From: Zancudomyces culisetae HAW-14-8
Taxonomy: Eukaryota; Fungi; Kickxellomycota
Reading direction: 5' to 3'
Assembly: GCA_052426225.1 (NCBI GenBank)
Contig: JBNJNM010000021.1
Span: 2,542,001 to 2,606,000, forward strand
Length of the DNA: 64,000 nucleotides
The notes beneath the pieces were generated by a model. That model had not been told where the DNA came from, ran no database searches, and saw nothing but the letters and a program-made list of their open reading frames with translations. Within the stretch, counting starts at the first letter, position 1. Every line of letters starts with the position of its first letter. Of this stretch, positions 4,129-64,000 are shown piece by piece. The translations under genes were made by a program, and so were the position numbers.

Positions 4129-4646
4129 TCAAGCCTCGTAAATAATACTTAAAATCTAGCTTTTAACTTTTTATTTTCCTTTTTCTTTGTTCTTTCTTTC
4201 TTTACCCCTTCATTAGTTTGCAAGTCTATTTTTAGCTGTTATTGTTTTTTATACTTGTTCTTTTCGTATTATTTACCAACCCATTATTTGTTACTCACAC
4301 TCTTATTTCATATATATCTTGAAAGTATCACATACAATATATTTTAATTACTCCCCCCATTGCAATTCCGCAAAGTATAAGCAAAACCATCTCAAACTAC
4401 AATTACAAACAATAAAAAGAAACATAATACAGTCTCACTGTATATTATTTTGAAACTCTTTTTATTCTTTTTTTTGGTGGTTTTTTTATGTGCAATTTAT
4501 AGATAAAGCCAATGACAAAAATATATAACACTATTGATTATGCAAAGAAACAGAGAATAACAGTACAAGTAACTAAACATGTGTATATAAAGACACATTT
4601 TCAAAAAAAATAATCCAGAAAAACCAGAAAACCGTCACCGTCAATT

Positions 4647-6653
4647 CTATCGCGTTCTTTTTGCCTTTTCGTTCCTATTAGACGCCAGCAAACGGTTATA
4701 TTTATCTACTGGAAAGCTGCTAGGAACCCTTTCAATCTCACTACTGGGGAAAATCAGTTCAAAGAAAAAATATAGCAAATAATCAACAACTGCTACCATA
4801 CAAAACAGCTTCCCGGCAACCCAACCACATCCATAATACAAGCGCAACCTTTCAACCAAGGGGGGTTCCAGATCATCAACAATTTTGTAGTATACAAGTT
4901 CGGTTCGGTAGGCAATGTCATGCCAGTTATACATTTTTTTGACTTGGTTGTGGAAGCTTTCAGGAGTCATCAAATGATGTTTTGAATTTTGAACACGCTT
5001 CGATAGTTTGCCTAGATACTTGTGCTCAAGCTTAGAGGTAAGAAGCATATGTGGATTGTCATGCATGTCATTTCCTGGGTGTGGGGTAAATTCAGAATCC
5101 GGTGTAGTAGTAAAGTTTGTGCCCGAATCGGATGAATAACCAACATCTTCGTCTTCGGAAGAATAGCTGTCGCTTGTACCCGATGAGTTGCAGTTCTGGC
5201 AAATCTCAGCCAAATTGCTGTCGTTTGAAATTACCGGGCCTTGGCTGTTCGCCTGTTCCACAGAACATTCTCGTAACTCCTTTCTCCTATACAACACTTT
5301 GGCTATTGCTTTATCAAGCGAGGAAACAATGTCGTTTTCCTCCGGTTTTGCAAAGGTAATCATGTGTTTGGGTAGAACCTCCGGAATACCACCAACCTTT
5401 GTTGAAACTACCAACAAGCCACATGATGCTGCCTCCACTATTCCTATACAAAACGCCTCTGTTAGACTTGTGTTTAGGAATATATCTCCCAAAATGAGGG
5501 TATCTCGCACTTGCGATGCCACAATTCTTCCTAGTAACTCCACTCGATCTTGTAGGTGATATTTTTCTCGCATTTGCTCCAAATCTACCCGTTTAGTTCC
5601 ATCACCACCAATCACAAACCTTACATTTTTGTGCTTAATACACACCCTTGGTATTGCTGCCATCAACAAATCTATACCTTTCCTATAAACTAATCTACTC
5701 AGCACGACTATTGTCACCCAATCTGTCTTATCATTATTTAACTCCTGCTCCGCCTGATTCCTAGGTTTAAAGTGCTCTGATATTATTGCATTCGGAATAG
5801 CGCTTACAAGTCGGGGATCAAGTGCTGCTCTAAGAACCGTGTTTTCTTTACTTGTATGTGAAACACATATTACGTGGTTAACGTCAGAAAGCGTGAATTT
5901 CAACAATTTATTCATCAATATTCCGCTTGTATCTGCAAAACCCAACAGTGAATGATCCGTAAATACCGTTTTCAACCCCATTGTTCGGGCGTGTAATATC
6001 GCTTCGTGGCACAATGTAGAAAAGGCCTATTATTTTTCAACGGTAATCAGTATAAAAAAAAACAAAAAAGGAAAAATCAAACATCTTGTTTTACTATTAT
6101 GAATACTGTTAGCAGAAACGTACCTGATGCCCATGAACAATTTCAATTTCTTCTCGAATGAATATATTTCGAAAGATTGGAAATGTACTGAAAAATGTTG
6201 GCAATGAGGCTTGACTAGCTATTACTGGCGCTGGTACGTAATACACCTTCAAGCCACCTGCCAAATACCGAATTCCATTTCTATTCCCGTAACTGTGCGT
6301 AACCACGATGACCTGGTCAGATTCAAATAATTAAAGTTTAGTTTACAGTTCTTCATATTCATTTAAACAAGTTTGCTTTTTTGTTTGTTAAAAAGGAGGG
6401 GAGGGGGAAGGAAATGAAGAAAACAAGAAAAACAGTGGAGATTTACCTTATGCCCTCTTTGGATCAAACACTGTGAGTTATGATAAACATGACTTTCTAC
6501 ACCACCGAGATTAGGATAGAAAAAGTCTGAAACCATGCTATTGATTGATATTTCATGAGAAAATCAACAATATGGCTTATTTTTCATTTTGCATAATAAA
6601 CTATCAAATTCTTACCATATACTCAATCTGCGCTTGCCATTCAAATTTTCCAT
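4647..6653 (-). CDS. GPI3: Phosphatidylinositol N-acetylglucosaminyltransferase catalytic subunit (PIG-A/GPI3), 4 exons
   Basis: Spliced translation [29 protein letters not shown]...[13 protein letters not shown]...[14 protein letters not shown]; GT4 motif [19 protein letters not shown]; GT-AG introns at ~6538-6615, ~6314-6446, ~6027-6123. Confidence 0.93.
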
Positions 6654-40487: not shown

Positions 40488-40814
40488 TACGTCCCGGCTT
40501 TACTTGGATTTGGTCTATCCTAGTTTAGTTTCATTTACCTCCTTTTTATTTCTTTTTATTTACTTTCCCACTTTCAAAACTAAAACTAAATATTAGTAAT
40601 AATAATTAATCACAATACAAAATGGTATTTAATATCTGAATGTGGGACAAACTACATGTACCCTCCATGTTAAACTTAATGGTAATAAAAGTGCGGTTGT
40701 GTTTGGTTTAGGTGTTATGCAAACAAAACTCCTGAGTTTTTTTTTATGGTAGAAAAAAGAATTTATTTAGAAGATAAACAGTTCCTAAAAATAAAAACAA
40801 TCTATAATCTAAAC

Positions 40815-43800
40815 TCATCCTATTCCCCTTCGACTCTCTAGAGTCTCCGTACCCGATGGGCATTGGTTCAAGGGGAGTGGGACTACACTAATGTCTTTCA
40901 ACAATAGGTAGCGAGGTAAAAAGGTCTCGTTAAGAAACCGGGCTGTGGAAACCACTGCTCTAACGCAAGTGGCGTTTGGATCCCGAAGAATCCCAGGTAG
41001 TTTGAGCTTTAACTCCTCCCCCAGGAGTTTACCCACGATTTTCCTGCGAAGCTCAACACACTCGGAAATCGTGCTAGATAAAAAAGAACTATAAAAATCT
41101 ATAAATTCAGTAAGTAAATCCTTCCTAATTTCGTCCCATCTACTGCAATCTAATAAGTAATGCTCAACTGTTTCTTTTTCTTCTTTCTTACAGAACGGAC
41201 ATTTGGCTTTGTAATCTGGATCTATAAACCCCGAATTTGCTAATCTCGTGGCGGTCCAAAATTGACCTATTCGAATTCGACCTACGAAAAGAATGTGTTT
41301 CATGTACTGTGGAAAGGCCGCTTGTAAGTCGACCCAATTCCTTTGTCGGCCTGCTCCAACTTCCTTTATCCACTTTGTAATATTCGACTTGTCTTTCAGC
41401 CTGTTGTTTATCTCGAGTGTCTCTTTGGTTTTTCTTACCTCTCCGGTTGGTGAATTGTCAATCTTGATCCTGTTGAATCTGTTAGACCACCTTGTGTACC
41501 CTGTGACCCAAGTGTCCTTCGAGTGTTTGAAGGGGTTCTGTATTAAATCTGCTATCCATGTTTTCATGCCACTCCATTTGTGGAATGCTCTGTCTCTAGC
41601 TCTGGTCGTTCTACTGTAAATATCTGTTATATTTAATTCTTCTCGCAATCTCCTCATGCATGTCGATCTGCCCACTCCCATGGCTATTCTCAATGTGTTG
41701 TCCACGGCTTGCTGTATCGGTTTTACCCTTGCTTCAGACATGCCGAACATTTCACCTCCATAACTAGCGACCGCAATGACTATCGACCTAATTACCATCT
41801 TTTTCATCAACAGCGGTGTATTTCTGTCTTTGAGTAGATAGTAGTTGCTCATGGTTGCTCTTTGTACTTTTTCTTTCCTCTCCTGTATGTGTAGCTTGTT
41901 ATTCCAATATTTATTGAATATAACACCCAAGTATTTATATTCATCTACTTCTGGTACTTTTGCACTTCCCAAAAAGTATTCTGGAATCGTAATTTCAATA
42001 TTATTGTTATTTTCGTCGCTTGTTCTATTCACTGCTTCAACTGTCATAATCGCACTCTTGCTAGCATTCACCTTCATGTCCCACTTCTGACACCATTGCT
42101 GCATCATGTTAAGTGCTTCTTGCATCTGTTCTGGAGTGTCTGACAATAAAACTGTATCGTCTGCAAATAGTAGTCCCGGAATTTTTTCTTGAATCCCTGG
42201 CACTTCTATTCCCTCCATTCCTTCAAATATATCGTTGATAAAAATATCAAAAAGCATTGGTGAGGCTGGGCATCCTTGGCGAACACCTCTTTCGAAGTTC
42301 ATCGCCTCCGATAATCTATTTCCTACCCTCACTTTTATCTTTGCGTTAGCGTATAATTCTTTAATTACTGTTAGCAATTTACCATTTATTTTGTTCATTT
42401 TTAATTTTTTGAATAATAAATTGTGTTGCACTTTGTCGTAGGCTTTTTCAAAATCAATAAAACAAATTATGGTTTTTGTATTATTAATTTTTCGCCTTTT
42501 TATAATTTCGTATAGAGCTGTAGCTTGAGCTACGCATTCCTCCAGTGTCCTGAATCCCGCTTGCTCTTTTGCTAATAATATATGTCTATTATCTATTAAT
42601 CTTAATTTATTAGCGACTATTTTAGCTATAAGTTTGGTTATGGTTGGGATTAGCGAAATCCCCCTATAATTGTTTGGGTCTTTAGTGTTTCCTTTTTTGA
42701 AGATAGGAACGATTACGCTAGTATTGTTTTCACTGTTTAACTTTGGATTATTCCAGAATTTTTTAATTATGGTTAATAAAAGTACTGCAAGTTCCGATTC
42801 TGCATCATCATCGCTTTGTGTACTTTTCCAAACTTCGCTTGGAATGCCATCCTCTCCAGCTGCTTTATTTCTCGGTGTCTCCTTGAGTGCTTCTTTTATT
42901 TCTGTCCATGTTGGCTCTTCGTCGCATTCTCTGAAGTAGTCCACTTCCTCCTCTCTTTCTTCTGGGATTGTGTTTAATGCTGAGTTTTCATTCTTCGATA
43001 GCTTGTAGAAATGTTTTATCCATACTTTGAGTTTTTCTGCTTCCTCTGTTATCTCCCTTCCTGATTCATCCAGGACTCCTCCATTATTGAAAACAGATTT
43101 TTTATTTAGAGCCCTCATTTTTAATCATCTCCACATCGTCTTGGCATCATTGCCTTTGATGTGTTCGCATAGTTTAACTAACTCCTTTTTTTTATGTAAT
43201 TTTTGGTCACTTTTGATCAGTTTTGTAGTTTTGGACTTCATCTGGACGTAGTCATTATAAAACAGCTCTTTCTCGTGTTCATCACAAGTTCTGAGCATTT
43301 TTTTGAACAATTTGCAACGAAGTTTGATCATTTTTCGCGTTTTTTTACTTAAAAAATGTTGATTTTTTTTGGCTTCGGAATTTTTTTCGGCCAATTTCTC
43401 ATTATTTTTTGGGTTTGGATTATTTTTTCTTGTCATCTTATCCATCAATTTTTTAGTCTCATTGACGGTTTCACTGATTAGTTCGTCAGTTTCGTTAAGA
43501 GATGTCAAAATTGAAAATTTATTGTGAGTTCTGAACAGTTCTGATTTTTGGTCCAATAGTTTCCGGTTGACAATTTTTTTTTGCTGCTCTGGTTTAATTT
43601 CCTCAATGGTAAAGTTGGCTGTAATAGCCAGATGGTCGCTGAGGTCAATTTTTTTGTGTAGTTTTGACATTACGAATTGTCCAACTGTGGGGGTATAAAA
43701 GATGTGGTCGATGGTGTTCTTCAGTCGCTTTTTTGTTATCCTTGTCCCGCTTCGTTTCCTTGTCGGGGCTCTCCTGACTATACACCTGAGTTTTTTTAGC

Positions 43801-44561
43801 CAAGGGGTTACTATACTTGTCCTCATATTGAAGTCGCCGCATAGTATTATTTTTATTTCCTTATTTTTCCCGTATTCCTTGTTGATAAAGTCCTCTACCT
43901 CCTTCTTCATCATAGTTCTTTCTTTTGGTTTGTGTGGCGTGTGTACATTCACTACCATCACTTCCAGTCTTTTATGCTCCTTTTCTGTATATCCATGTAT
44001 TTTTGCGGCCATCCAGGTATTATTATTTTTATACTCCTCTATGTGCCAGCCAATATTTTTTTTTACCCCTACTAGAAGACCAGAACCCGTCTTTAGTGTC
44101 GGCCTTTTTGACTCTACACATGTGTAGCCATTTATGTTCATCCTCCCAGATTTCTCCTGCAGGTGGGTCTCCTGCAAGCATAGTATGGTTGGGTTGATCT
44201 TTGTTAGAAAATAATCTAATTCATGTTTTTTATTTTTTATTGAGCATACGTTGTATGTCATTATTTTTAGGTTAATTTTTTCATTTTTTTTATCTATTTT
44301 TTTTTGGTATAAATTTTTAGTTTTTTCATTTTTTCTATTTTTCTCTCTTTCATTTTTATTTTCTTCAACTTTTAGTATACACTTTAATTTTTTTTCAAAC
44401 TCCAATTTTTTTAGGACGGATACACGAAGCTGGGAACCATCGATTTTTTGGATTTCGAAACGGTAAGATTTATTGTATTGTTTAATTTTTTTAACGTGTA
44501 AATTTTTTTTTTCGATTTTTGTTATGTTCGAAAAAAAATATTTTACAGTTTTCTGAGACAA
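40815..44561 (-). pseudogene. ORF2 of copy A (APE endonuclease-RT-CCHC) broken by TGG>TGA at 43125-43127
   Basis: The 478-aa and 767-aa ORFs are in frame and colinear with the intact 1248-aa ORF2 of copy C (MWRWLK vs MWR*LK). Confidence 0.92.
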
Positions 44562-44673
44562 TTCTGGTATGTTGAGTACCAGTAATTTATCAGTTATGAT
44601 ATTTGTTGTTATTTTTGTTTGTGTTGTTGTTGTTATTGTTGTACTTATGTATTTCTGTTACTTGAATAGGATG

Positions 44674-46269
44674 TTAATCCATTACATTTATCGGAGATGA
44701 AGGAGGGTCTTCCTCCATCTCCGCATCATGGATGCTGGGACCGATTTGATTGCTGTTGTCTTGATCCGGAGGTTTTCCGGTTCCGCTGTCTTCCGCCTCG
44801 CCGTGTGGTGCCTCTTGCTGGTTTTGCGTTTGATTCTGTTCCTGTGCTTGCTGTTGTTCTTGTACTTGGTGTTGTTCTTGTACTTGGTGTTGTTCCCGTG
44901 CTTGTTGTTGCTCCTGTGGTTGTGTTTCCATTGCCACTTCCCCTTCCAAAGTAAGTATATTTATTTCGGTTCTTATAGCTTCCTCCTTTTCTTTATTTGC
45001 AATCTTCTGCGCGAGTATTAAGAATGCTTTGTCCTCTTTAACTTTCTTTTGTTTGTTGTTTTTTTTGTTTGTTTTTTGTTTCAATATTTTATATTTTTGT
45101 GTGTTTGTTTTTTTCCTGATTATGTTGTTATTAAAAAGAACATCATTAATAATATTTTCCACTTCCATGTTTTCTTGTTTCAGCTCATGTTCTTGTCTTA
45201 GAACTTCCTCTTCATCTTGTTCTTGCTTTTTTTTTTGTATTTCCGAGTCGTATCCTTCATCCATAAGGTTTTCGTAGTTATCAATAAAATTTGTGTTCAC
45301 CATTTCTTTTTCTTGTTGTACCTCTTTCTGCTCCTGATGTTGAGCTGAGACTCGATCTTTTTTTTGTTTTCCCTTCTGTTCTTGTGGTTGTGGTTGTGCT
45401 GAGGCTTGGTCTTTTACCCGTCCCTTTTCTTTTGTTCTTTCCTTTACTTTTTGATTTTCTTGTTCGCTCCCTTTTTGTCGCTCTTGTTCGATCTGGTTTT
45501 TGCCTTTTTCGATGATGTTCATCATCTCCCTGTACTTGTCCGGTCTGCCTCTTTTCCTTAGTTTTGCCAGTTCAGGGCACTCGCTTTTCCAGTGGCCTTC
45601 CTTCTTGCAGTATGTGCATGAAGCTGGGGCCCCATCCCAGATAAGATTGACCTTCTCATCTTTTACTACTAACGTGGTGGGCAATATGGCTAAGTCGTGC
45701 ATCTTAATCAATACTTTTAAGCTATTGACAAAGAAATGGTTGTTGCCCGGCACCCTCAGTGCCATTATATCTGCAACTTCACCATACTGACTTAGCTCTT
45801 CGTACAAATTCTTCACAAAGCCATGTATTTCATCATTCTTAAAGGATGGTATAGTTACCACCTTCGTCTTTTCTGAATGTTGGAAAGTGTTATACAGGTT
45901 TAGCTCCTTTCCTGTTATTGTTTCCTCAATTTTTCTGGCCTCTTCTGCTTCTTCCAGTGTTGTGAACCAGACAAACAGGACGCCTCTTTCTCTATCTTGG
46001 TCAAATGAGATTTCAAAATCTTTTAAGGTATCAGATATCTCTCTCACTGCCGCGTCATAGTTCTCATTGATACTTCTAGTTCTGATGGCGAATTTTCGCT
46101 CATCTCTAGTTCTGCATACCATCATGTTTCCTACATTGGGTCTCTCATCGACCCAGTATAGGACGGAGTATTGTTGGTAGAGCACCGCTCTTCCTCCCCT
46201 TGCAGCTTGGTAGCTGCCACTTTGCGCAGTTTGCGCGTAAGACTTTTCTTTCGTCTGCGTTGATGCCAT
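44674..46269 (-). CDS. LINE ORF1 (gag-like) of copy A
   Basis: Starts MASTQTKEK as in copy C; zinc knuckle CTYCKKEGHWKSEC; Q/E coiled-coil region. Confidence 0.88.
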   Translation of the reverse strand: MASTQTKEKSYAQTAQSGSYQAARGGRAVLYQQYSVLYWVDERPNVGNMMVCRTRDERKFAIRTRSINENYDAAVREISDTLKDFEISFDQDRERGVLFVWFTTLEEAEEARKIEETITGKELNLYNTFQHSEKTKVVTIPSFKNDEIHGFVKNLYEELSQYGEVADIMALRVPGNNHFFVNSLKVLIKMHDLAILPTTLVVKDEKVNLIWDGAPASCTYCKKEGHWKSECPELAKLRKRGRPDKYREMMNIIEKGKNQIEQERQKGSEQENQKVKERTKEKGRVKDQASAQPQPQEQKGKQKKDRVSAQHQEQKEVQQEKEMVNTNFIDNYENLMDEGYDSEIQKKKQEQDEEEVLRQEHELKQENMEVENIINDVLFNNNIIRKKTNTQKYKILKQKTNKKNNKQKKVKEDKAFLILAQKIANKEKEEAIRTEINILTLEGEVAMETQPQEQQQAREQHQVQEQHQVQEQQQAQEQNQTQNQQEAPHGEAEDSGTGKPPDQDNSNQIGPSIHDAEMEEDPPSSPINVMD

Positions 46270-46662
46270 ATCTTCGCAGACGTTTCTTGGTTTTTTTGTT
46301 TTTGGATCAGTTAAATTTGGTAGATTTGGGTTTAAATTTATGTTCAGTTGGACTAAATGTGTTGAGATCGGTGCTAATCTCACTCGGAAACTATTTTAAA
46401 CGGGTTTTTAGGACCTTTTAGGTGCTTTTTACTGTGTTTTTAACGCTTTTTTTACGCTTTTTGTAACTTTTTTTGTTATCTTTTTGTTATCTTTTTATGT
46501 TTTTTCTTATGTTTTTTTATTGCTATATATCTTTTTTTTTCTTATGGTTTTTAATGTTTTTAGGCTTGTTTTAAAGGTAATATTTTATTTAAGATGTTGT
46601 GTGATTTTAGTCGCTGTCAATAGTCGATATCGCTATATTTTTCAATTTTTTAAAAAATGTAC

Positions 46663-47526
46663 TTTTTTTTTTTTTTTTTTTTCGGTAGAAAAAAAATTTA
46701 TTTAGAAAATAAACAGTTCCTAAAAATAAAAACAATCTATAATCTAAACTCATCCTATTCCCCTTCGACTCTCTAGAGTCTCCGTACCCGATGGGCATTG
46801 GTTCAAGGGGAGTGGGACTACACTAATGTCTTTCAACAATAGGTAGCGAGGTAAAAAGGTCTCGTTAAGAAACCGGGCTGTGGAAACCACTGCTCTAACG
46901 CAAGTGGCGTTTGGATCCCGAAGAATCCCAGGTAGTTTGAGCTTTAACTCCTCCCCCAGGAGTTTACCCACGACTTTCCTGCGAAGCTCAACACACTCGG
47001 AAATCGTGCTAGATAAAAAAGAACTATAAAAATCTATAAATTCAGTAAGTAAATCATTCCTAATTTCGTCCCATCTGCTGCAATCTAATAAATAATGCTC
47101 AACTGTTTCTTTTTCTTCTTTCTTACAGAACGGACATTTGGCTTTGTAATCTGGATCTATAAACCCCGAATTTGCTAATCTCGTGGCGGTCCAAAATTGA
47201 CCTATTCGAATTCGGCCTACGAAAAGAATGTGTTTCATGTACTGTGGAAAGGCCGCTTGTAAGTCGACCCAATTCCTTTGTCGGCCTGCTCCAACTTCCT
47301 TTATCCACTTTGTAACATTCGACTTGTCTTTCAGCCTGTTGTTTATCTCGAGTGTCTCCTTAGTTTTTCTTACCTCTCCGGTTGGTACATTATCAATCTT
47401 GATCCTGTTGAATCTGTTAGACCACCTTGTGTACCCTGTGACCCAAGTGTCCTTCGAGTGTTTGAAGGGGTTCTGTATTAAATCTGCTACCCATGTTTTC
47501 ATGCCACTCCATTTGTGGAATGCTCT
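46663..47526 (-). mobile_element. 5'-truncated LINE copy B; its poly(A) abuts the 5' end of copy A
   Basis: Near-identical to the ORF2 3' end and 3' UTR; 20-nt poly(A) at 46663-46682. Confidence 0.93.
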
Positions 47527-47705: not shown

Positions 47706-48674
47706 TTAGTTTTCTGGGATCACAACATCACCAGAGTCAATCTTCTTTTGAACTTCGTATGGGCTTTCACCGTCAACAGTACAACCAACTGAAAATGCTG
47801 TACCAAGGATCTCTTTGACAGTTCCGGAGAGGTTTCGTGAGTATGACTTGTTAGCCTCTCTCATGGTCTTTGCAACGTTGATGATATCTTTCAATGAAAG
47901 GTTTCCACTGTGTTTGATGTTCTTCTCCTTCTTACGATCACGGTATGGCTCCTTCAATGCCTTGACAACCAATGCGGATGCGGATGGAACAATGTCAATG
48001 GTTGCTTGACGGTTTTGAACTGTGAGTTGAACAGTCATGCGCAAACCTTTCCAGTCCTTTGTAGCCTTGGCAATGTCTTCTCCGATCTTCTTTGGGGACA
48101 AACCGAGAGGACCCAATTTTGGAGCCAGAGATGAGGAAGCACCGACTTCTCCTCCGGTAACTCTGAGTTTGACTATATGAGTATATAAATGTTAGCTATG
48201 GTTTGAATAAGCCTCGTAATAAACAAATCCGGCGTTCAACTAGATTATGGCAAAGCTTAGCAACAACCCAACGACTTGATATACTTTATAACATTTAAAA
48301 TTTTCAATGAACGGTCCAGATCAAGCTGTAACCCATAATACCACAAAATTCTTCAATATAATAATGATATTAGTGCGTTCCTTATAGTTTTGCACAAGTT
48401 TTTCAGCTTTTCAACTAAAAAAAATACATGCATAAAGATGACCATCTCATTTTATGGGATGGATTTTATATTTACACATTGAATCGCATTGCCTTTTTGT
48501 AAATTAAAATGGATTCATGCTCGCCAAATCTCGATAATGCCTGATTAAAATTCATTGAATCCTCTTTTAGGGCATTCATTTCACCGCTCTTAAAAGTTTG
48601 CTCTGGTGAATAAAGATAAGCAGAAATATATACTTACTTATTTTAATTTCGGTTGGGTCTGGCTTTGGAGGCAT
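47706..48674 (-). CDS. RPL12: 60S ribosomal protein L12 (uL11), 2 exons
   Basis: [50 protein letters not shown]; intron 48173-48637 (GTAAGT...GCTAAC...TAG). Confidence 0.96.
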
Positions 48675-53513: not shown

Positions 53514-54806
53514 ATGTCACAGATTTCAAAGACAAAGAAGGTAATTAATTTGATTAGAACTAGACTGGATATATTGGTGACGCGGCTTGTAAATAGCATG
53601 AACTCAAACAGCGTGCCTCTACTTGGGAGATGTTGCTACAATCTTAGTTTACACTTTTATGTGTTTATAAACTGATGGTTTTAGTAATAATATGGGGCTA
53701 TTTCTATCAGAAGAAATGTGTTGGGTGCGGTTTAAAACTTATACACATATCCCATCACTATCCGATTGATAAAGGCCTTGCACACGTAGTCAAATTCAAA
53801 CCTTTGGGAGAAAAAACAAGTGATGAGTGCAGATTACTGCCAAAATTATTCTGACACCTCTTGTTTGAATGCCACAAGGAGAGCTAGTTGCTTTGGAGTA
53901 GTATCTCGAAGTATATTCTAGCTTTTCTTGCGGTATAATGCACTTAACGCATACTCTGAAAAGTTTTTTCTTTTGACTTTGACTGCGATGTTTGAGTTTT
54001 AGATGTATGATAGTCGCATTAGTGATAAAACGATATTTCCAAGTATTTACAACTAAATGTATTTTAAAATAATATAGCTTGTTGCTGACGGAGTATTCTA
54101 CGCCGAATTGGATCAATTTTTCCAACGTGAATTGGCAGCAGAGGGTTACTCAGGTTGTGAAGTCAGAGTAGCACCAGCACGCACAGAAATCATCATTAGA
54201 GCTATACAAACACAAGATGTTCTTGGTGTAAAGGGAAGAAGAATTAGAGAATTGACATCAATTGTTCAAAAGAGATTTGGATTTGCCGAAGGAACATGCG
54301 AGTTGTTTGCAGAGAGAGTAGCTGCTCGTGGTCTTTCAGCTGTAGCACAAGCTGAGTCGCTTAAATATAAATTGCTTCAAGGATTGGCTGTTCGTCGTGC
54401 CTGTTACTCAGTTATGAGATATGTAATGGAATCAGGTGCCAAGGGATGTGAAATTGTTGTATCAGGAAAACTTAGAGCTGCAAGAGCCAAGTCAATGAAG
54501 TTTGCCGACGGATTTATGGTTCACAGTGGTCACCCAGCACAACAATTCATTGACTACGCTGTTCGTCACGCCGAGATGAAACAAGGTGTCTTGGGTATCA
54601 AGGTAAAGATCATGTTGGACTGGGATCCTACTGGTAGAATTGGACCAAAGAACCCTCTACCTGATATGGTTACTATTGTTGAGCCAAAAGAGGAGGCAGC
54701 CTTTGTTGAGCCAACATCTGAAGATAAAATGAAGCCAGCACCAGCAGCCCCAGCACAAAACGTTGAGTCAGCCGATGCAGCTGCTTCAGCTGTTCAAGCC
54801 ATATAA
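53514..54806 (+). CDS. RPS3: 40S ribosomal protein S3 (uS3), 2 coding exons plus a probable 5'-UTR intron at 53276-53508
   Basis: [35 protein letters not shown]...; [20 protein letters not shown]; intron 53541-54077. Confidence 0.96.
53809..53971 (+). ncRNA. Candidate intronic box C/D snoRNA
   Basis: C box GTGATGA at 53820-53826, D box CTGA at 53956-53959, perfect 9-bp terminal stem AGAAAAAAC/GTTTTTTCT, internal CTGA at 53851, long internal hairpin. Confidence 0.65.
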
Positions 54807-55103
54807 ATTTTATATATATTTTGACCCATTTTATATATGAAACCTGTCTTTTTCAACTGTTCTAATTTACTATACTATACAACATTCTAATTAAAATTTT
54901 TGATAATTGTACATTGGTCGTGTGTCGCAAACCAATTTACGTGTCGAAATGTAAACATAGACAAATCATTGTTTTTTGTTTTATTGATAAACTAGCACAT
55001 TAAGGGTGGTCTCACAGACTCTCTCCTCAATAATTGGAGGCGTCACGTTAACATCAACCATGGTTAAGCTTGTGTTACGGGACGAAAAAATGGATGAAAA
55101 AAT

Positions 55104-55479
55104 TCGCTGGGTATGGAGGTGAAATGTTCGGCATGTCTGAAGCAAGGGTAAAACCGATACAGCAAGCTGTGGACAACACATTGAGAATAGCCATGGGAGT
55201 GGGCAGATCGACATGCATGAGGAGATTGCGAGAAGAATTAAATATAACAGATATTTACAGTAGAACGACCAGAGCTAGAGACAGAGCATTCCACAAATGG
55301 AGTGGCATGAAAACATGGATAGCAGATTTAATACAGAACCCCTTCAAACACTCGAAGGACACTTGGGTCACAGGGTACACAAGGTGGTCTAACAGATTCA
55401 ACAGGATCAAGATTGACAATTCACCAACCGGAGAGGTAAGAAAAACCAAAGAGACACTCGAGATAAACAACAGGCTGAA
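55104..55479 (+). mobile_element. 5'-truncated LINE copy D, left part (interrupted)
   Basis: Matches the late ORF2 region with copy-A-type variants; stops at AAACAACAGGCTGAA. Confidence 0.9.
55465..55479 (+). repeat. 15-bp target-site duplication AAACAACAGGCTGAA, copy 1 of 3 (others at 56964-56978 and 63062-63076)
   Basis: Direct reading of the three junctions. Confidence 0.9.
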
Positions 55480-56966
55480 AGTACCAGGAATTCAAGAAAA
55501 AATTCCGGGACTACTATTTGCAGACGATACAGTTTTATTGTCAGACACCCCAGAACAGATGCAAGAAGCTCTTAACATGATGCAGCAATGGTGTCAGAAG
55601 TGGGACATGAAGGTGAATGCTAGCAAGAGTGCGATTATGACAGTTGAAGCAGTGAATAGAACAAGCGACGAAAATAACAATAATATTGAAATTACGATTC
55701 CAGAATACTTTTTGGGAAGTGCAAAAGTACCAGAAGTAGATGAATATAAATACTTGGGTGTTATATTCAATAAATATTGGAATAACAAGCTACACATACA
55801 GGAGAGGAAAGAAAAAGTACAAAGAGCAACCATGAGCAACTACTATCTACTCAAAGACAGAAATACACCGCTGTTGATGAAAAAGATGGTAATTAGGTCG
55901 ATAGTCATTGCGGTCGCTGGGTATGGAGGTGAAATGTTCGGCATGTCTGAAGCAAGGGTAAAACCGATACAGCAAGCCGTGGACAACGCGATAAGAATAG
56001 CCATGGGAGTGGGCAGATCGACATGTATGAGGAGATTGCGAGAAGAATTAAATATAACAGATATTTACAGTAGAACGACCAGAGCTAGAGACAGAGCATT
56101 CCACAAATGGAGTGGCATGAAAACATGGATAGCAGATTTAATACAGAACCCCTTCAAACACTCGAAGGACACTTGGGTCACAGGGTACACAAGGTGGTCT
56201 AACAGATTCAACAGGATCAAGATTGATAATGTACCAACCGGAGAGATAAGAAAAACCAAAGAGACACTCGAGATAAACAACAGACTGAAAGACAAGTCGA
56301 ATATTACAAAGTGGATAAAGGAAGTTGGAGCAGGCCGACAAAGGAACTGGGTCGACTTACAAGCGGCCTTTCCACAGTACATGAAACACATTCTTTTCGT
56401 AGGTCGAATTCGAATAGGCCAATTTTGGACCGCCACGAGATTAGCAAATTCGGGTTTTATAGATCCAGATTACAAAGCCAAATGTCCGTTCTGTAAGAAA
56501 GAAGAAAAAGAAACAGTTGAACATTACCTATTAGATTGCAGCAGATGGGACGAAATTAGGAATGATTTACTTACCGAATTTATAGATTTTTATAGTTCTT
56601 TTTTATCTAGCACGATTTCCGAGTGTGTTGAGCTTCGCAGGAAAATCGTGGGTAAACTCCTGGGGGAGGAGTTAAAGCTCAAACTACCTGGGATTCTTCG
56701 GGATCCAAACGCCACTTGCGTTAGAGCAGTGGTTTCCACAGCCCGGTTTCTTAACGAGACCTTTTTACCTCGCTACCTAGTGTTGAAAGACATTAGTGTA
56801 GTCCCACTCCCCTTGAACCAATGCCCATCGGGTACGGAGACTCTAGAGAGTCGAAGGGGGATAGGATGAGTTTAGATTATAGATTGTTTTTAATTGTTTA
56901 TAGGAACTGTTTATTTTCTAAATAAATTTTTTTTTCTACCGAAAAAAAAAAAAAAAAAAAAAAAAA
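55480..56966 (+). mobile_element. 5'-truncated LINE copy E nested in copy D
   Basis: Begins in RT (VPGIQEKIPGLLFADD), appears identical to the 3' part of copy C, and ends in a 25-nt poly(A) followed by the target duplication. Confidence 0.9.
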
Positions 56967-57446
56967 CAACAGGCTGAACTTCATTTTTTAAAAAATTGAA
57001 AAATATAGCGATATCGACTATTGACAAACGTATCCAGGGAAGATTTTATACACTATAGTACTTCATTTTTTAAAAAATTGAAAAATATAGCGATATCGAC
57101 TATTGACAGCGACTAAAATCACACAACATCTTAAATAAAATATTACCTTTAAAACAAGCCTAAAAACATTAAAAACCATAAGAAAAAAAAAGATATATAG
57201 CAATAAAAAAACATAAGAAAAAACATAAAAAGATAACAAAAAGATAACAAAAAAAGTTATAAAAAACCCAAAAAACATAGTAAAAAGTACCCAAAAGGTC
57301 ATAAAAAACTCATAAAAAACACGTCTAAACCGAGATTAGTACTGATCTCGACACATTTAGTCCAACTGAACATAAATCTAAACCTAAATCTACTAAATTT
57401 AACTGACCTTAAATCCAAAAAAACCCTAAGAAACGTCTGCGAAGAT

Positions 57447-59108
57447 ATGGCATCAACGCAGACGAAAGAAAAGTCCTATGCGCAAACTGCGCAAAGGGGC
57501 AGCTACCAAGCTGCAAGAGGAGGTAGAGCGATGCTCTACCAACAATACTCTATCCTCCACTGGGTCGATGAGAGACCCGATGTAGGGAATATGATTGTTT
57601 GCAGAACCAGAGATGAGCGAAAACTCGCCATCCGAACCAGAAGCATCAACGCAAACTATGATGCAGCAATGGGTGAGATCTCTGATACCCTAAAAGACTT
57701 TGAAGTATCATTCGACCAAGACAGAGAAAGAGGAGTTCTGTTTGTCTGGTTCAAAACAGTGGAAGACGCAGAAGCGGCTAGAAAGATCAAAAAAACTGTG
57801 TCAGGAAAGGAGCTAGATCTGTGGAACACCTTTCAACACACTGAAGTAACGAAAGTGGTGACCATACCATCATTCAAGAACGATGAGATCCATGGATTCG
57901 TCGCAAATCTATACCAAGTAATGAAGCACTATGGTGAGATTGCAGACATTATGGCATTAAGGGTGGCGGGCAACGATCACTTCGTTGTCAACAGCCTAAA
58001 GGTACTAATAAGGATGCACAAGGGAGCTAAACTGCCTACAACAATAGTGGTAAAGGATGAAAAGATCAATCTGATCTGGGATGGGGCGCCAGCCTCTTGC
58101 ACATACTGCAAGATTGAGGGTCACTGGAAGAGTGAATGCCCTGAACTGGCAAAACAAAGAAAAAGAAACAGACCAGACAGGTACAGAGAAATAAAACAAA
58201 TGATAGCAGAAGGTAAAAACCAGATTGAACAGGAGAGACAAAAAGAAATGGAAATGAATAAGGAGTTAGAAATGCAGAATGAACTAGAAAACCAACACGA
58301 AAAAAAAAGACAACAAGAACAGGAAAAACGCCAGGAACGGGAAAAGCAGCAAAAAGAAGCCGAAAAGGAAGCGGAAAACGAAGCTGATAATGAAAATGAA
58401 AATGAGAAGGAAAGGGCAAGCGATAAAGAAAGCTTTGACGACGACTACGAAAGTCGTATGGACGAAGGTTACGACTCGGAAGAGGAAAAACAAGAACGAG
58501 TACAAAATGAAGAGGAAGCACGAAAACAAGCAGAACTGGAGAAAGCAGAAAACATGGAGGTGGAAAATATCATCAACGAAGTTATCTTTAATAACAACAT
58601 TAGTAAAAAAAAAACAAAAAAACAAAAATTCAAAATACTGAAACAAAGCAGTAAACAAAAACAGATCAAAAAGATCAATAAACAAAAAAAAAATAAGGAA
58701 GACAATGCAGTCATAAGGCTGGCACAAAAGCTTGCGATGAAGGAAAAAGAAGTAAAAGAAAGAATAGAAAGAGAATCACTTACAGCAGAAGGGGAGACAC
58801 GAATGGAAGCACAGCCACAACAAGAGGAACAAGGGCAAGAACAACAACAACTACAAGAGCAGCAACAAGGACAAGAGCAGCAACAAGGACAAGAGCAGCA
58901 ACAAGGACAAGAGCAAGTACAAGAACAACAGCAAGCACAGGAACAGAATCAAACGCAAAACCAGCAAGAGGCACCACACGGCGAGGCGGAAGACAGCGGA
59001 ACCGGAAAACCTCCGGATCAAGACAACAGCAATCAAATCGGTCCCAGCATCCATGATGCGGAGATGGAGGAAGACCCTCCTTCATCTCCGATAAATGTAA
59101 TGGATTAA
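57447..59108 (+). CDS. LINE ORF1 (gag-like, zinc knuckle) of copy C
   Basis: CTYCKIEGHWKSEC; Q/E-rich repeats. Confidence 0.9.
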   Translation: MASTQTKEKSYAQTAQRGSYQAARGGRAMLYQQYSILHWVDERPDVGNMIVCRTRDERKLAIRTRSINANYDAAMGEISDTLKDFEVSFDQDRERGVLFVWFKTVEDAEAARKIKKTVSGKELDLWNTFQHTEVTKVVTIPSFKNDEIHGFVANLYQVMKHYGEIADIMALRVAGNDHFVVNSLKVLIRMHKGAKLPTTIVVKDEKINLIWDGAPASCTYCKIEGHWKSECPELAKQRKRNRPDRYREIKQMIAEGKNQIEQERQKEMEMNKELEMQNELENQHEKKRQQEQEKRQEREKQQKEAEKEAENEADNENENEKERASDKESFDDDYESRMDEGYDSEEEKQERVQNEEEARKQAELEKAENMEVENIINEVIFNNNISKKKTKKQKFKILKQSSKQKQIKKINKQKKNKEDNAVIRLAQKLAMKEKEVKERIERESLTAEGETRMEAQPQQEEQGQEQQQLQEQQQGQEQQQGQEQQQGQEQVQEQQQAQEQNQTQNQQEAPHGEAEDSGTGKPPDQDNSNQIGPSIHDAEMEEDPPSSPINVMD

Positions 59109-59223
59109 CATCCTATTCAAGTAACAGAAATACATAAGTACAACAATAACAACAACAACAACACAAACAAAAATAACAACAAATATCATAACTGATAAAC
59201 TACTGGTACTCAACATACCAGAA

Positions 59224-62200
59224 TTGTCTCAGAAAACTGTAAAATATTTTTTTTCGTTCATCACAAAAATCGAAAAAAAAAATTTACACGTTAAAAAAAT
59301 CAAACAGAAAAATAAATCTTACCGCTTCGAAATCCAAAAAATCGACGGCTCCATGATTCGCATTACCGACCTAAATAAATTGAAGTTGGAAAAAAAATTA
59401 AAGTGTATACTAAAAGTTGAAGAAAATAAAAATGAAAGAGAGAAAAATTTAAAAAACAAAAAAACAAAAAATTTATACCAAAAAAAAATTGAAAAAAAAA
59501 ATGAAAAAATTAACCTAAAAATAATGACATACAACGTATGCTCAATAAAAAATAAAAAATATGAATTAGATTATTTTTTAACCAAAGTAAATCCAACCAT
59601 ACTATGCTTGCAGGAGACCCACCTGCAGGAGAAGTCTGGGAGGATGAACATAAATGGCTACACATGTGTAGAGTCAAAAAGGCCGACACTAAAGACGGGT
59701 TCTGGTCTTCTAGTGGGGGTAAAAAAAAATATTGGCTGGCACATAGAGGAGTATAAAAATAATAATACCTGGATGGCCGCAAAAATACATGGATATACAG
59801 AAAAGGAGCATAAAAGACTGGAAGTGATGGTTGTGAATGTACACACACCACACAAGCCCAGAGAAAGGACACAGATGAAGAAGGAAGTAGAAGACTTTAT
59901 AAACAAAGAATACGGTAGAAACAGAGAAATAAAAATAATACTATGCGGAGACTTCAACATGAGGACGAGCATCGTCACACCATGGTTGAAAAAACTCAGG
60001 TGTATAGTCAGGAGAGCCCCGACAAGGAAACGAAGCGGAACTAGGATAACAAAAAAGCGACTGAAGAACACCATCGATCACATCTTTTATACCCCCACAG
60101 TAGGACAATTCGTGACAACAAAACTACACAAAAAAATTGACCTCAGTGATCATCTGGCTATTACAGCCAACTTTACCATTGAGGAAATTAAACCAGAGCA
60201 GCAAAAAAAAATTGTCAACCGGAAACTATTGGACCAAAAATCAGAACTGTTCAGAACTCACAATAAATTTTCAATTTTGACATCTCTTAACGAAACTGAC
60301 GAACTAATCAGTGAAACCGTTAATGAGACTAAAAAATTGATGGATAAGATTACAAGAAAAAATAATCCAAACCCAAAAAATAATGAGAAATTGGCCGAAA
60401 AAAATTCCGAAGCCAAAAAAAATCAACATTTTTTAAGTAAAAAAACGCGAAAGATGATCAAACTTCGTTGCAAATTGTTCAAAAAAATGCTCAGAACTTG
60501 TGATGAACACGAGAAAGAGCTGTTTTATAATGATTACGTCCAGATGAAATCTAAAACTTCAAAGCTAATAAAAAGTGACCAAAAATTACATAATAAAAAG
60601 GAGTTAGTGAAACTATGTGAACACATCAAAGGCAATGATGCCAAGACGATGTGGAGATGGTTAAAAATGAGAGCTCTAAATAAAAAATCTGTGTTTAATA
60701 ACGGAGGAGTCCTGGATGAATCAGGAAGGGAGATAACAGAGGAGGCAGAAAAACTCAAAGTATGGATAAAACATTTCTACAAGCTATCGAAGAATGAAAA
60801 CTCAGCATTAAACACAATCCCAGAAGAAAGAGAGGAGGAAGTGGACTACTTCAGAGAATGCGACGAAGAACCAACATGGACAGAAGTTAAAGAAGCGCTA
60901 AAAGAAACTCCGAGAAACAAAGCAGCGGGTGAAGATGGCATTCCGAGCGAAATCTGGAAATTTATACAGAGCGATGAAGATCCAGAATCGGAACTTGCAG
61001 TACTTTTATTAACCATAATTAAAAAATTCTGGAATAATCCAAAGTTAAACAGTGAAAACAATACCAGCGTAATCGTTCCTATTTTCAAAAAAGGAAACAC
61101 TAAAGACCCAAACAATTATAGGGGGATTTCGCTAATCCCAACCATAACCAAACTTATAGCCAAAATAGTCGCTAATAAATTAAGATTAATAGATAATAGA
61201 CATATATTATTAGCAAAAGAGCAAGCGGGATTCAGGACACTGGAGGAATGCGTAGCTCAAGCCACAGCGCTATACGAAATTATAAAAAGGCGAAAAATCA
61301 ATAATACAAAAACCATAATTTGTTTTATTGATTTTGAAAAAGCCTACGACAAAGTGCAACACAATTTATTATTCAAAAAATTAAAAATGAACAAAATTAA
61401 TGGTAAATTACTGGCAGTAATTAAAGAACTCTATAATAACGCAAAAATAAAAGTAAGGGTAGGAAATGGATTATCGGAGGCGATGAACTTCGAAAGAGGT
61501 GTTCGCCAAGGATGCCCAGCCTCACCAATGCTTTTTGATATTTTTATCAACGATATATTTGAAGGAATGGAGGGAATAGAAGTACCAGGAATTCAAGAAA
61601 AAATTCCGGGACTACTATTTGCAGACGATACAGTTTTATTGTCAGACACCCCAGAACAGATGCAAGAAGCTCTTAACATGATGCAGCAATGGTGTCAGAA
61701 GTGGGACATGAAGGTGAATGCTAGCAAGAGTGCGATTATGACAGTTGAAGCAGTGAATAGAACAAGCGACGAAAATAACAATAATATTGAAATTACGATT
61801 CCAGAATACTTTTTGGGAAGTGCAAAAGTACCAGAAGTAGATGAATATAAATACTTGGGTGTTATATTCAATAAATATTGGAATAACAAGCTACACATAC
61901 AGGAGAGGAAAGAAAAAGTACAAAGAGCAACCATGAGCAACTACTATCTACTCAAAGACAGAAATACACCGCTGTTGATGAAAAAGATGGTAATTAGGTC
62001 GATAGTCATTGCGGTCGCTGGGTATGGAGGTGAAATGTTCGGCATGTCTGAAGCAAGGGTAAAACCGATACAGCAAGCCGTGGACAACGCGATAAGAATA
62101 GCCATGGGAGTGGGCAGATCGACATGTATGAGGAGATTGCGAGAAGAATTAAATATAACAGATATTTACAGTAGAACGACCAGAGCTAGAGACAGAGCAT

Positions 62201-62970
62201 TCCACAAATGGAGTGGCATGAAAACATGGATAGCAGATTTAATACAGAACCCCTTCAAACACTCGAAGGACACTTGGGTCACAGGGTACACAAGGTGGTC
62301 TAACAGATTCAACAGGATCAAGATTGATAATGTACCAACCGGAGAGATAAGAAAAACCAAAGAGACACTCGAGATAAACAACAGACTGAAAGACAAGTCG
62401 AATATTACAAAGTGGATAAAGGAAGTTGGAGCAGGCCGACAAAGGAACTGGGTCGACTTACAAGCGGCCTTTCCACAGTACATGAAACACATTCTTTTCG
62501 TAGGTCGAATTCGAATAGGCCAATTTTGGACCGCCACGAGATTAGCAAATTCGGGTTTTATAGATCCAGATTACAAAGCCAAATGTCCGTTCTGTAAGAA
62601 AGAAGAAAAAGAAACAGTTGAACATTACCTATTAGATTGCAGCAGATGGGACGAAATTAGGAATGATTTACTTACCGAATTTATAGATTTTTATAGTTCT
62701 TTTTTATCTAGCACGATTTCCGAGTGTGTTGAGCTTCGCAGGAAAATCGTGGGTAAACTCCTGGGGGAGGAGTTAAAGCTCAAACTACCTGGGATTCTTC
62801 GGGATCCAAACGCCACTTGCGTTAGAGCAGTGGTTTCCACAGCCCGGTTTCTTAACGAGACCTTTTTACCTCGCTACCTAGTGTTGAAAGACATTAGTGT
62901 AGTCCCACTCCCCTTGAACCAATGCCCATCGGGTACGGAGACTCTAGAGAGTCGAAGGGGGATAGGATGA
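59224..62970 (+). CDS. LINE ORF2: APE endonuclease, reverse transcriptase and C-terminal CCHC; true start uncertain
   Basis: IMTYNV, LCLQET, ILCGDFN, IDHIF, SDHLAI (APE); NYRGISL, QAGFR, FIDFEKAYD, GVRQGCPASPMLF, LFADD, YKYLG (RT); CPFC-ETVEHYLLDC. Confidence 0.95.
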   Translation: MSQKTVKYFFSFITKIEKKNLHVKKIKQKNKSYRFEIQKIDGSMIRITDLNKLKLEKKLKCILKVEENKNEREKNLKNKKTKNLYQKKIEKKNEKINLKIMTYNVCSIKNKKYELDYFLTKVNPTILCLQETHLQEKSGRMNINGYTCVESKRPTLKTGSGLLVGVKKNIGWHIEEYKNNNTWMAAKIHGYTEKEHKRLEVMVVNVHTPHKPRERTQMKKEVEDFINKEYGRNREIKIILCGDFNMRTSIVTPWLKKLRCIVRRAPTRKRSGTRITKKRLKNTIDHIFYTPTVGQFVTTKLHKKIDLSDHLAITANFTIEEIKPEQQKKIVNRKLLDQKSELFRTHNKFSILTSLNETDELISETVNETKKLMDKITRKNNPNPKNNEKLAEKNSEAKKNQHFLSKKTRKMIKLRCKLFKKMLRTCDEHEKELFYNDYVQMKSKTSKLIKSDQKLHNKKELVKLCEHIKGNDAKTMWRWLKMRALNKKSVFNNGGVLDESGREITEEAEKLKVWIKHFYKLSKNENSALNTIPEEREEEVDYFRECDEEPTWTEVKEALKETPRNKAAGEDGIPSEIWKFIQSDEDPESELAVLLLTIIKKFWNNPKLNSENNTSVIVPIFKKGNTKDPNNYRGISLIPTITKLIAKIVANKLRLIDNRHILLAKEQAGFRTLEECVAQATALYEIIKRRKINNTKTIICFIDFEKAYDKVQHNLLFKKLKMNKINGKLLAVIKELYNNAKIKVRVGNGLSEAMNFERGVRQGCPASPMLFDIFINDIFEGMEGIEVPGIQEKIPGLLFADDTVLLSDTPEQMQEALNMMQQWCQKWDMKVNASKSAIMTVEAVNRTSDENNNNIEITIPEYFLGSAKVPEVDEYKYLGVIFNKYWNNKLHIQERKEKVQRATMSNYYLLKDRNTPLLMKKMVIRSIVIAVAGYGGEMFGMSEARVKPIQQAVDNAIRIAMGVGRSTCMRRLREELNITDIYSRTTRARDRAFHKWSGMKTWIADLIQNPFKHSKDTWVTGYTRWSNRFNRIKIDNVPTGEIRKTKETLEINNRLKDKSNITKWIKEVGAGRQRNWVDLQAAFPQYMKHILFVGRIRIGQFWTATRLANSGFIDPDYKAKCPFCKKEEKETVEHYLLDCSRWDEIRNDLLTEFIDFYSSFLSSTISECVELRRKIVGKLLGEELKLKLPGILRDPNATCVRAVVSTARFLNETFLPRYLVLKDISVVPLPLNQCPSGTETLESRRGIG

Positions 62971-63061
62971 GTTTAGATTATAGATTGTTTTTAATTGTTT
63001 ATAGGAACTGTTTATTTTCTAAATAAATTTTTTTTTCTACCGAAAAAAAAAAAAAAAAAAA

Positions 63062-63741
63062 AAACAACAGGCTGAAAGACAAGTCGAATATTACAAAGTG
63101 GATAAAGGAAGTTGGAGCAGGCCGACAAAGGAATTGGGTCGACTTACAAGCGGCCTTTCCACAGTACATGAAACACATTCTTTTCGTAGGTCGAATTCGA
63201 ATAGGTCAATTCTGGACCGCCACGAGATTAGCAAATTCGGGGTTTATAGATCCAGATTACAAAGCCAAATGTCCGTTCTGTAAGAAAGAAGAAAAAGAAA
63301 CAGTTGAGCATTACTTATTAGATTGCAGTAGATGGGACGAAATTAGGAAGGATTTACTTACTGAATTTATAGATTTTTATAGTTCTTTTTTATCTAGCAC
63401 GATTTCCGAGTGTGTTGAGCTTCGCAGGAAAATCGTGGGTAAACTCCTGGGGGAGGAGTTAAAGCTCAAACTACCTGGGATTCTTCGGGATCCAAACGCC
63501 ACTTGCGTTAGAGCAGTGGTTTCCACAGCCCGGTTTCTTAACGAGACCTTTTTACCTCGCTACCTAGTGTTGAAAGACATTAGTGTAGTCCCACTCCCCT
63601 TGAACCAATGCCCATCGGGTACGGAGACTCTAGAGAGTCGAAGGGGAATAGGATGAGTTTAGAATATAGATTGTTTTTATTTTTTAGGAACTGTTTATTT
63701 TCTAAATAAATTTTTTTTTCTACCGAAAAAAAAAAAAAAAA
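63062..63741 (+). mobile_element. Right part of interrupted copy D, with its own poly(A)
   Basis: Resumes exactly at AAACAACAGGCTGAAAGACAAG where the left part stopped; poly(A) at 63726-63741. Confidence 0.9.
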
Positions 63742-64000
63742 TCAAGATTGATAATGTACCAACCGGAGAGGTAAGAAAAACTAAGGAGACACTCGAGATA
63801 AACAACAGGCTGAAAGACAAGTCGAATGTTACAAAGTGGATAAAGGAAGTTGGAGCAGGCCGACAAAGGAATTGGGTCGACTTACAAGCGGCCTTTCCAC
63901 AGTACATGAAACACATTCTTTTCGTAGGCCGAATTCGAATAGGTCAATTTTGGACCGCCACGAGATTAGCAAATTCGGGGTTTATAGATCCAGATTACAA
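63741..64000 (+). mobile_element. 5'-truncated LINE copy F abutting the poly(A) of D; runs off the window
   Basis: Starts ATCAAGATTGATAATGTACC; shares diagnostic variants with copy B (aaaactaaggag, aatgttac, gtaggccg). Confidence 0.88.

Follow-up and report, generated by a model that had tools for sequence, protein, structure and literature searches.

Two probable insertions of a LINE at one target within an older copy of its own family, and the landing of that family behind ribosomal-protein genes, in the fungus Zancudomyces culisetae

Double insertion into one target, with a copy of the target-site duplication (TSD) in the junction between the two elements, has been described for R1 in the ribosomal DNA (rDNA) of Drosophila, for jockey and for the P-element, and the differing 5' truncations of the dimer members were taken there as proof of two events (McGurk and Barbash 2018, PMC5932611). 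Regarding insertion into resident copies, the Zepp and Zepp-like long interspersed nuclear elements (LINEs) of the L1 type in green algae insert into copies of themselves and form clusters and tandem arrays that, owing to 5' truncation, consist mostly of 3' ends, with one cluster per chromosome that is thought to be centromeric (PMC3446292, PMC8226300, citing Higashiyama 1997). In human, L1-into-L1 nesting is biased towards the sense orientation by about 2:1 (PMC2836564), and L1 or Alu insertions have used the same endonuclease site twice independently, once with equal TSD size (PMC3219598). Finally, TRE5 and TRE3 of Dictyostelium are position-specific LINEs that are found at transfer RNA (tRNA) genes (PMC6101501, PMC5911963). 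Here we analyse a stretch of 64,000 nucleotides (nt) of contig JBNJNM010000021.1 of Zancudomyces culisetae HAW-14-8, which we call the window, where a LINE had been predicted to be inserted twice into a member of its own family at the same internal site, and we compare it with the remaining copies of this family in the genome (27.1 Mb in 25 contigs), of which the family makes up 135.5 kb or 0.50%.

The layout of the nested array was obtained by BLAST of its full-length copy, named C, against the window. All window coordinates are relative to the 64,000-nt stretch and element positions are numbered on C; ORF stands for open reading frame.

55104..55464, forward strand: D-left, the 5' part of an older 5'-truncated copy, D, element 5037-5397 (BLAST match to C 55104-55481 = element 5037-5414, 97.1% identity)
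55465..55479, forward strand: TSD copy 1, 15 bp of D
55480..56941, forward strand: E, a young 5'-truncated copy, element 4602-6083 (BLAST match to C 55479-56960 = element 4602-6083, 100% identity)
56942..56963, forward strand: poly(A) tail of E (the A-run, 56942-66, has 25 A in total, including the first 3 A of the TSD)
56964..56978, forward strand: TSD copy 2, between the tail of E and the 5' end of C
56979..63042, forward strand: C, a young full-length copy with ORF1 at 57447-59108 and ORF2 at 59224-62970 (BLAST span 56979-63061 = element 1-6083)
63043..63061, forward strand: poly(A) tail of C (the A-run, 63043-64, has 22 A in total, including the first 3 A of the TSD)
63062..63076, forward strand: TSD copy 3
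63077..63741, forward strand: D-right, the remainder of D up to element 6080, plus a tail of 16 A (BLAST match to C 63062-63741 = element 5398-6080, 97.8% identity)
about 63742..64000, forward strand: F, the next 5'-truncated copy, from element 5339, which adjoins the tail of D

The order of the parts, i.e. D-left, TSD, E, poly(A), TSD, C, poly(A), TSD and D-right, is the one that had been proposed originally, and the 15-mer AAACAACAGGCTGAA, read then as a triplicated TSD, was found by a search of the window in three exact occurrences, starting at 55465, 56964 and 63062. The two parts of D have just the duplicated 15-17 bp in common and apart from that continue one another, therefore D is one older copy split at one site. 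The 5' junction of E is uncertain by 1-3 nt, with a microhomology AAG to D-left, and the array runs on past the end of the window with two further copies, G and H.

Several features of this array indicate that E and C are in all likelihood two separate target-primed insertions and not the result of a DNA duplication. All three copies of the TSD in the window bear the variant of D, GGCTGAA, whereas the homologous internal sites of E (56275) and C (62376) read GACTGAA. The repeats thus match D and are one base off the sites in E and C, which means that they are duplications of the target and not pieces of the inserts. Furthermore, contig 8 holds a copy (L019 in our list of loci, which are labelled L001-L046) that is identical over 1,482 bp both to E and to the 3' part of C. 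The copy at L019 starts exactly where E does, but it lies in unrelated DNA behind RPS14 with a 17-bp TSD of its own, and therefore E looks like an ordinary product of retrotransposition, of a 5'-truncated type that arises repeatedly. The A-runs are also unequal, E being followed by 25 A and C by 22, and the 5' ends are distinct, since E begins at element 4602 and C at element 1. The claim of two integrations at one target, with the same second-strand cut, is thus supported by the D-variant TSDs and the independent E-type copy. Likewise, the expectation that the site would fit the nick of an endonuclease of the APE type agrees with what we see: the context GAT/AAAC fits a TTT/A-type nick of the bottom strand, and a TSD of 15 bp is typical of the family, whose TSDs measured 13-18 bp and could be resolved in 16 of the 17 insertions examined.

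The events may be pictured as follows. The older truncated copy D, whose array starts 298 bp behind the stop codon of RPS3, would have been nicked at GAT/AAAC, and the other strand would have been cut 15 bp downstream. One event of target-primed reverse transcription (TPRT) would have placed the truncated E and another one the full-length C, each leaving a copy of the target, which gives three in total. Regarding the order, we favour as the most economical one that E came first and that C landed on the poly(A)/TSD junction of E: C would have been primed within the A-tract of E, and the cut of the second strand would have fallen where it had in the first event. The opposite order, in which C came first and E re-nicked the left copy of the TSD, also fits the sequence. 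If C landed in the poly(A) tail of E, the position of its first-strand nick is hidden in the A-run, and just the second-strand cut must coincide, in an unchanged sequence context. The landing of a new copy on the poly(A) junction of an older one is proven at locus L024: there the full-length copy G sits right where the tail of F meets the next copy, H, and A(n) plus 14 bp of H stand on both of its sides. As a rough estimate from the 13-18-bp TSDs and the tract of 25 A, the coincidence of the second-strand cut would amount to a few per cent per event; since internal positions recur so often, a second nick in the left copy of the TSD seems about as probable.

The element is an APE-type non-long-terminal-repeat retrotransposon, with the APE domain followed by the reverse transcriptase, poly(A) tails, 5' truncation and variable TSDs. 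Both ORFs of C are intact. In ORF2 we found with Pfam Exo_endo_phos (7.1e-12, residues 101-310), RVT_1 (8.2e-40, residues 624-882) and, in a zinc-binding C-terminus, zf-RVT, and in ORF1 a weak zf-CCHC zinc knuckle that stays under the threshold (18.4 bits against a cut-off of 20.8). The nearest solved relative of ORF2 is human L1 ORF2p (1e-26), and the closest proteins in the databases are 26-33% identical to the element. The genome holds 54 tails of the family, with lengths of 7-27 A, and the 5' ends of the copies vary from element position 1 to 5921. At least seven full-length copies are 99.9-100% identical, every one with an intact ORF2, and to judge by these sequences the family is apparently active at present.

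Both arrays of the window lie behind a ribosomal-protein (RP) gene, as the positions of the neighbouring features indicate:

54108..54806, forward strand: last exon of the RPS3 gene (Pfam Ribosomal_S3_C 2.4e-28, KH_2 1.2e-11)
47706-48116, reverse strand: RPL12 gene (Pfam Ribosomal_L11 7e-18)
40737..47526, reverse strand: second array of the same LINE family, made of a fragment (element 5216-6083) and then a diverged full-length copy (BLAST)

The second array begins 180 bp downstream of RPL12 and is in sense orientation. This placement is repeated in the whole genome, since the family lands time and again behind RP genes in sense orientation. According to Pfam, at least 26 of about 38 family loci have an RP gene upstream on the same strand, and at 21 of 25 sites the closest long ORF upstream shared the strand of the LINE. 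Besides RPS3 and RPL12, the RP families found upstream were L29, L15e, S13/S18, acidic P, L1/L10A, L16/L10e, S7e, L32e, L18A, S8e, S8, S7/S5, L2, S28e, an L7Ae-family protein, S11/S14, L4, S2/SA, S12/S23, L14/L23, L5/L11, S24e, S9/S16 and L39. At no locus was an upstream gene other than an RP gene identified. The 22 spacers measured between the stop codon and the LINE were 113-435 bp long, with one of 715 bp; the spacers behind RPL11 and RPS24 were around 450-490 bp, and at RPL39 and RPS16 the LINE is about 0.8-1 kb from the exons found, where final exons may lie closer. A random site would be expected to have such a placement by chance in about 0.1% of cases. The insertions therefore have in common the class of the gene, the distance and the orientation, as those of a retrotransposon that targets a gene class do.

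We also considered whether the upstream RP ORFs are retro-pseudogenes fused to the LINEs, and this was rejected because RPL15 and RPL4 each occur just once in the genome, so the upstream genes are the real genes. Targeting of tRNA genes was discarded as well, as there was one tRNA in 33 loci and none in the window. Not every RP gene is occupied: by coordinates, no LINE C-terminus was found within 5 kb of RPS6, RPL3 or two RPS1 genes. Young solo copies with TSDs are found behind RPL35, RPL15, RPS14 and an acidic P gene, where the surrounding DNA has no match to any copy of the LINE, which means that the RP flank itself is targeted and not just resident LINE DNA. The landing zone would consist of the termination zones just downstream of highly transcribed RP genes together with the LINE copies located there, on the sense strand. 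Each of the events that occurred far from a gene is found about 100-300 bp downstream of the stop codon of a LINE copy already in place; these events are G in L024, the one from element 4105 in L011, at 6.4 kb from the RPS7 stop codon, and, if it was the second to arrive, C. This suggests that the 3' ends of the LINE offer the same cue. If the landing zone is very small, resident copies are hit repeatedly and arrays grow, and this one cause would yield the head-to-tail stacking, the nesting in 3' fragments, the strict sense orientation and an occasional double hit. We consider it rather likely, although by no means certain, that integration is actively directed to the termination zones of RP genes and to the LINE copies there, on the sense strand.

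Regarding the nesting of the family in itself, 22 of the 54 3' tails directly adjoin DNA of the own family, compared with its share of 0.50% of the genome (binomial P about 1e-36). None of these 22 junctions is antisense, and each locus with several copies has a single orientation. Eight of the 16 insertions with a resolvable TSD are proved by it to lie within own-family DNA. The building of nested arrays that the original prediction had suggested, which here are head to tail, is therefore supported. The clusters are many per contig, e.g. six places on contig 8 and eight on contig 11. The density of endonuclease sites was rejected as a cause of the nesting or of the sense bias: over the final 1.08 kb of the element, the density of motifs of the T/AAA type is not above the background and is about equal on both strands, which explains neither the enrichment nor the orientation. 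Self-nesting and the double insertion seem to be largely a by-product of the landing in RP flanks. What had been called self-targeting would accordingly be better described as sense-strand targeting of the 3' flanks of RP genes, where the resident copies are hit.

A related family is also involved in nesting. It is a second LINE family, whose full-length copies elsewhere are around 40% identical at the protein level and whose C-terminus ends in the same GIG motif. Four or five copies of the first family lie inside its homologous ORF2 3' region, in sense orientation (L033:8454-8864, L004:8624-, L030:1097-, L034:2125- and L008:1780-1832).

The best of the competing explanations is a sequence-specific self-targeting, in which the endonuclease recognises the internal site in ORF2 and sibling elements are nicked there repeatedly, but even this one we hold to be unlikely. 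It would account for the use of the same target by E and C; tail-to-internal junction positions do recur, namely 5567 (L001 and L003), 5596 (L025 and L032) and 5633/5637 (L004 and L028); and endonuclease sites of human L1 have been used twice with the same TSD size (PMC3219598). Nevertheless, around 28 other intact copies of the 15-mer are present in sibling elements of the genome and all of them are unoccupied, and a poly(A) followed by the 12-mer of the site occurs in 27 Mb only at the two places of the window, that is, in 2 of 54 3' junctions. Thus, the genome-wide count of junctions bears out the enrichment of element-internal targets but not the site, and the claim of a strong re-insertion hotspot, or of a site recognised by the element itself, does not hold. 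Nested insertions proved by their TSDs are found at many other element positions (5121 and 5288 in L011, 5173 in L006, 5507 in L003 and 5566 in L001), and the TSD sequences, including those of the solo insertions, are unrelated among them, which is not what a sequence-specific LINE such as R1, R2 or Tx1 would leave. As for the recurrence at 5596, the array in L032 has a mosaic middle unit, put together from the units next to it, as from unequal crossing-over.

The two loci with junctions at around 5596 deserve a description of their own. L032:1342-2922 and L025:6359-8188 each have two tandem units that start from about element 5595/5596. We considered them as further double insertions at a same site and rejected this, because the loci are not copies of one composite and L032, with its mosaic middle unit, fits an unequal exchange.

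The remaining explanations concern the E/C structure itself. According to one of them there was a single insertion of C, then an unequal exchange between the copies of the TSD gave a C-C dimer, and the left copy then lost 4,601 bp from its 5' end by deletion. The complete identity of E with the 3' part of C, the mosaic of L032, which shows that unequal exchange does occur in these arrays, and the 3-nt microhomology at the D-left/E junction are all in line with this. However, it requires two rare events, the tail lengths differ, and the deletion must have recreated by chance the very 5' end, 4602, of the independent L019 copy with its own TSD; we regard it as very improbable. We give just as little credence to a single complex retrotransposition with template switches, from the RNA of C to the target overhang and then to an E-type RNA before joining. 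The 5' end of C has a 48-nt duplication and 9 nt that match the flank of the locus of another copy, which points to jumps between templates, or to initiation upstream, in the family, but the overhang must have been copied and then used again, there is no second structure of this kind among the 54 junctions, and simple template jumps yield tail-to-head joins without a TSD between them. Least credible of all is that the E/C arrangement is an assembly artefact absent from the organism, for which an exact 1.5-kb repeat with its copies 4.6 kb apart could speak, because D-left/E and poly(A)-TSD/C-5' are both novel junctions that no simpler allele or mixture of alleles supplies together, the A-runs differ, and the 25 contigs for 27 Mb are taken as a sign of long-read assembly.

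Taken as a whole, two TPRT insertions at one target within a small landing zone in the RP flank are the best explanation, and we consider it probable. Some points weigh against it. The order of the events and the position of the first-strand nick of the second event are not readable from the sequence, and either order requires an exact coincidence of the second-strand cut. No motif is shared by the 22 spacers between the RP stop codon and the LINE beyond generic T-rich words of 3' untranslated regions (UTRs) and AATAAA. Around 12 of the approximately 38 loci have no identified RP gene (six were examined and gave no match or could not be judged, and seven were outside the examination). Furthermore, the E/C structure was read from the assembled contig.

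Other observations concern the copies and their ends. In the window, D-left and E are fused in frame and form an open frame of 599 codons (55070-56869), from just behind RPS3 to the ORF2 stop codon of E. No contigs on record encoding this D-left/E fusion ORF or ORF1 were found.

Exact 5' truncation points recur in independent insertions with different TSDs. The 5' end at element 4602 was found twice (window 55479 and L019:1493-2974, reverse strand), in copies that are 100% identical, and the one at 5036/5037 three times (window 55104, L022:1627 and L006:1284), with TSDs that differ. An RNA hairpin behind these recurrent ends, 4602 and 5037, was rejected, as the folding was no better than that of shuffled sequences (z 0.16 and -0.28); they could possibly reflect a discrete 5' end of the RNA or a pause site of the reverse transcriptase.

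Regarding the full 5' end, C differs from all other copies by an additional 5' unit (56979-57108), whose first 48 nt recur at 57061-57108, 82 bp downstream. Between the two 48-nt repeats there are 9 transduced nt and the usual 5' end of the element, which may come from a template jump at the 5' end of the RNA. The transduced 9 nt, AACGTATCC, are at 57027-57035 of the window, within the 5' UTR of C. These same 9 nt were met among the 5' transductions of two other copies: the full-length copy in L005 (8099-8110) bears 11 nt that agree with the flank upstream of the L004 copy (2147-2157), and the L009 copy (7762) begins with 11 nt of the target site in L008 (1820-1832). From these transductions, transcription of the source copies seems to begin upstream of the element.

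Two full-length copies (99.97% and 99.3% identical to C) stand head to tail behind RPL11 in L044:3425-7101 and L033:1-8451, where the tail of the first one adjoins an A-run in the 5' UTR of the second one. Finally, L016:1487-3885 and L017:1781-4176 are internal fragments (element 2168-4563, around 90% identity) with identical flanks on both sides, and they look like part of another repeat or of a segmental duplication rather than normal LINE insertions.

Compared with the dimers of R1, jockey and the P-element, the window shows the same copy of the target between the elements and on both outer sides, and its dimer members, E and C, have different 5' truncations as well. Those dimers can grow by unequal exchange, which is seen here in L032. 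On the other hand, in the window an older member of the family itself contains the target, a larger array behind an RP gene has the dimer as one of its layers, and the host is an early-diverging fungus near the Kickxellomycotina, whose CCT6 protein is 71% identical to the one of Smittium. Zepp is alike in the layout of the arrays, with 5'-truncated copies nested into residents and arrays of 3' ends; unlike its clusters, the present ones are small and many per contig, each behind a different RP gene, and there are also solo copies behind RP genes, in DNA that matches no copy of the LINE. TRE5 and TRE3 share with this family a characteristic distance from a gene class, TSDs of variable sequence and repeated hits at the same genes in a compact genome, whereas the targets are here RP genes transcribed by RNA polymerase II (Pol II), on their 3' side and in sense orientation only, with no tRNA genes nearby. 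The sense bias is shared with human L1 nesting, although in this family it amounts to 22:0 and goes with the direction of the gene upstream.

Neither double insertion nor nesting of the Zepp kind is therefore new, and what does appear to be new is the targeting of RP flanks by a LINE; no report of a LINE associated with the flanks of RP genes was found in the literature that was searched, which is not a proof of novelty. The triplicated TSD is a clean natural case of double insertion, with which, in a process that has been described before, a dispersed element begins to turn into a tandem array. To our knowledge, the LINEs known to be target-specific go to repeated RNA genes, microsatellites, telomeres or tRNA genes. 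If the targeting is true, the 3' flanks of RP genes would be a new class of safe-haven target for an APE-type LINE, and both the triplicated TSD and the nesting in arrays would simply follow from how tiny the landing zone is. Furthermore, sense-only targeting of dozens of unrelated, single-copy Pol II genes for ribosomal proteins, without a shared sequence, would imply a tether to a feature specific to the gene or to termination. This hypothesis is directly testable, as the fungus has a small genome and apparently active copies of the element. An apparent self-targeting can thus arise from the targeting of a niche.

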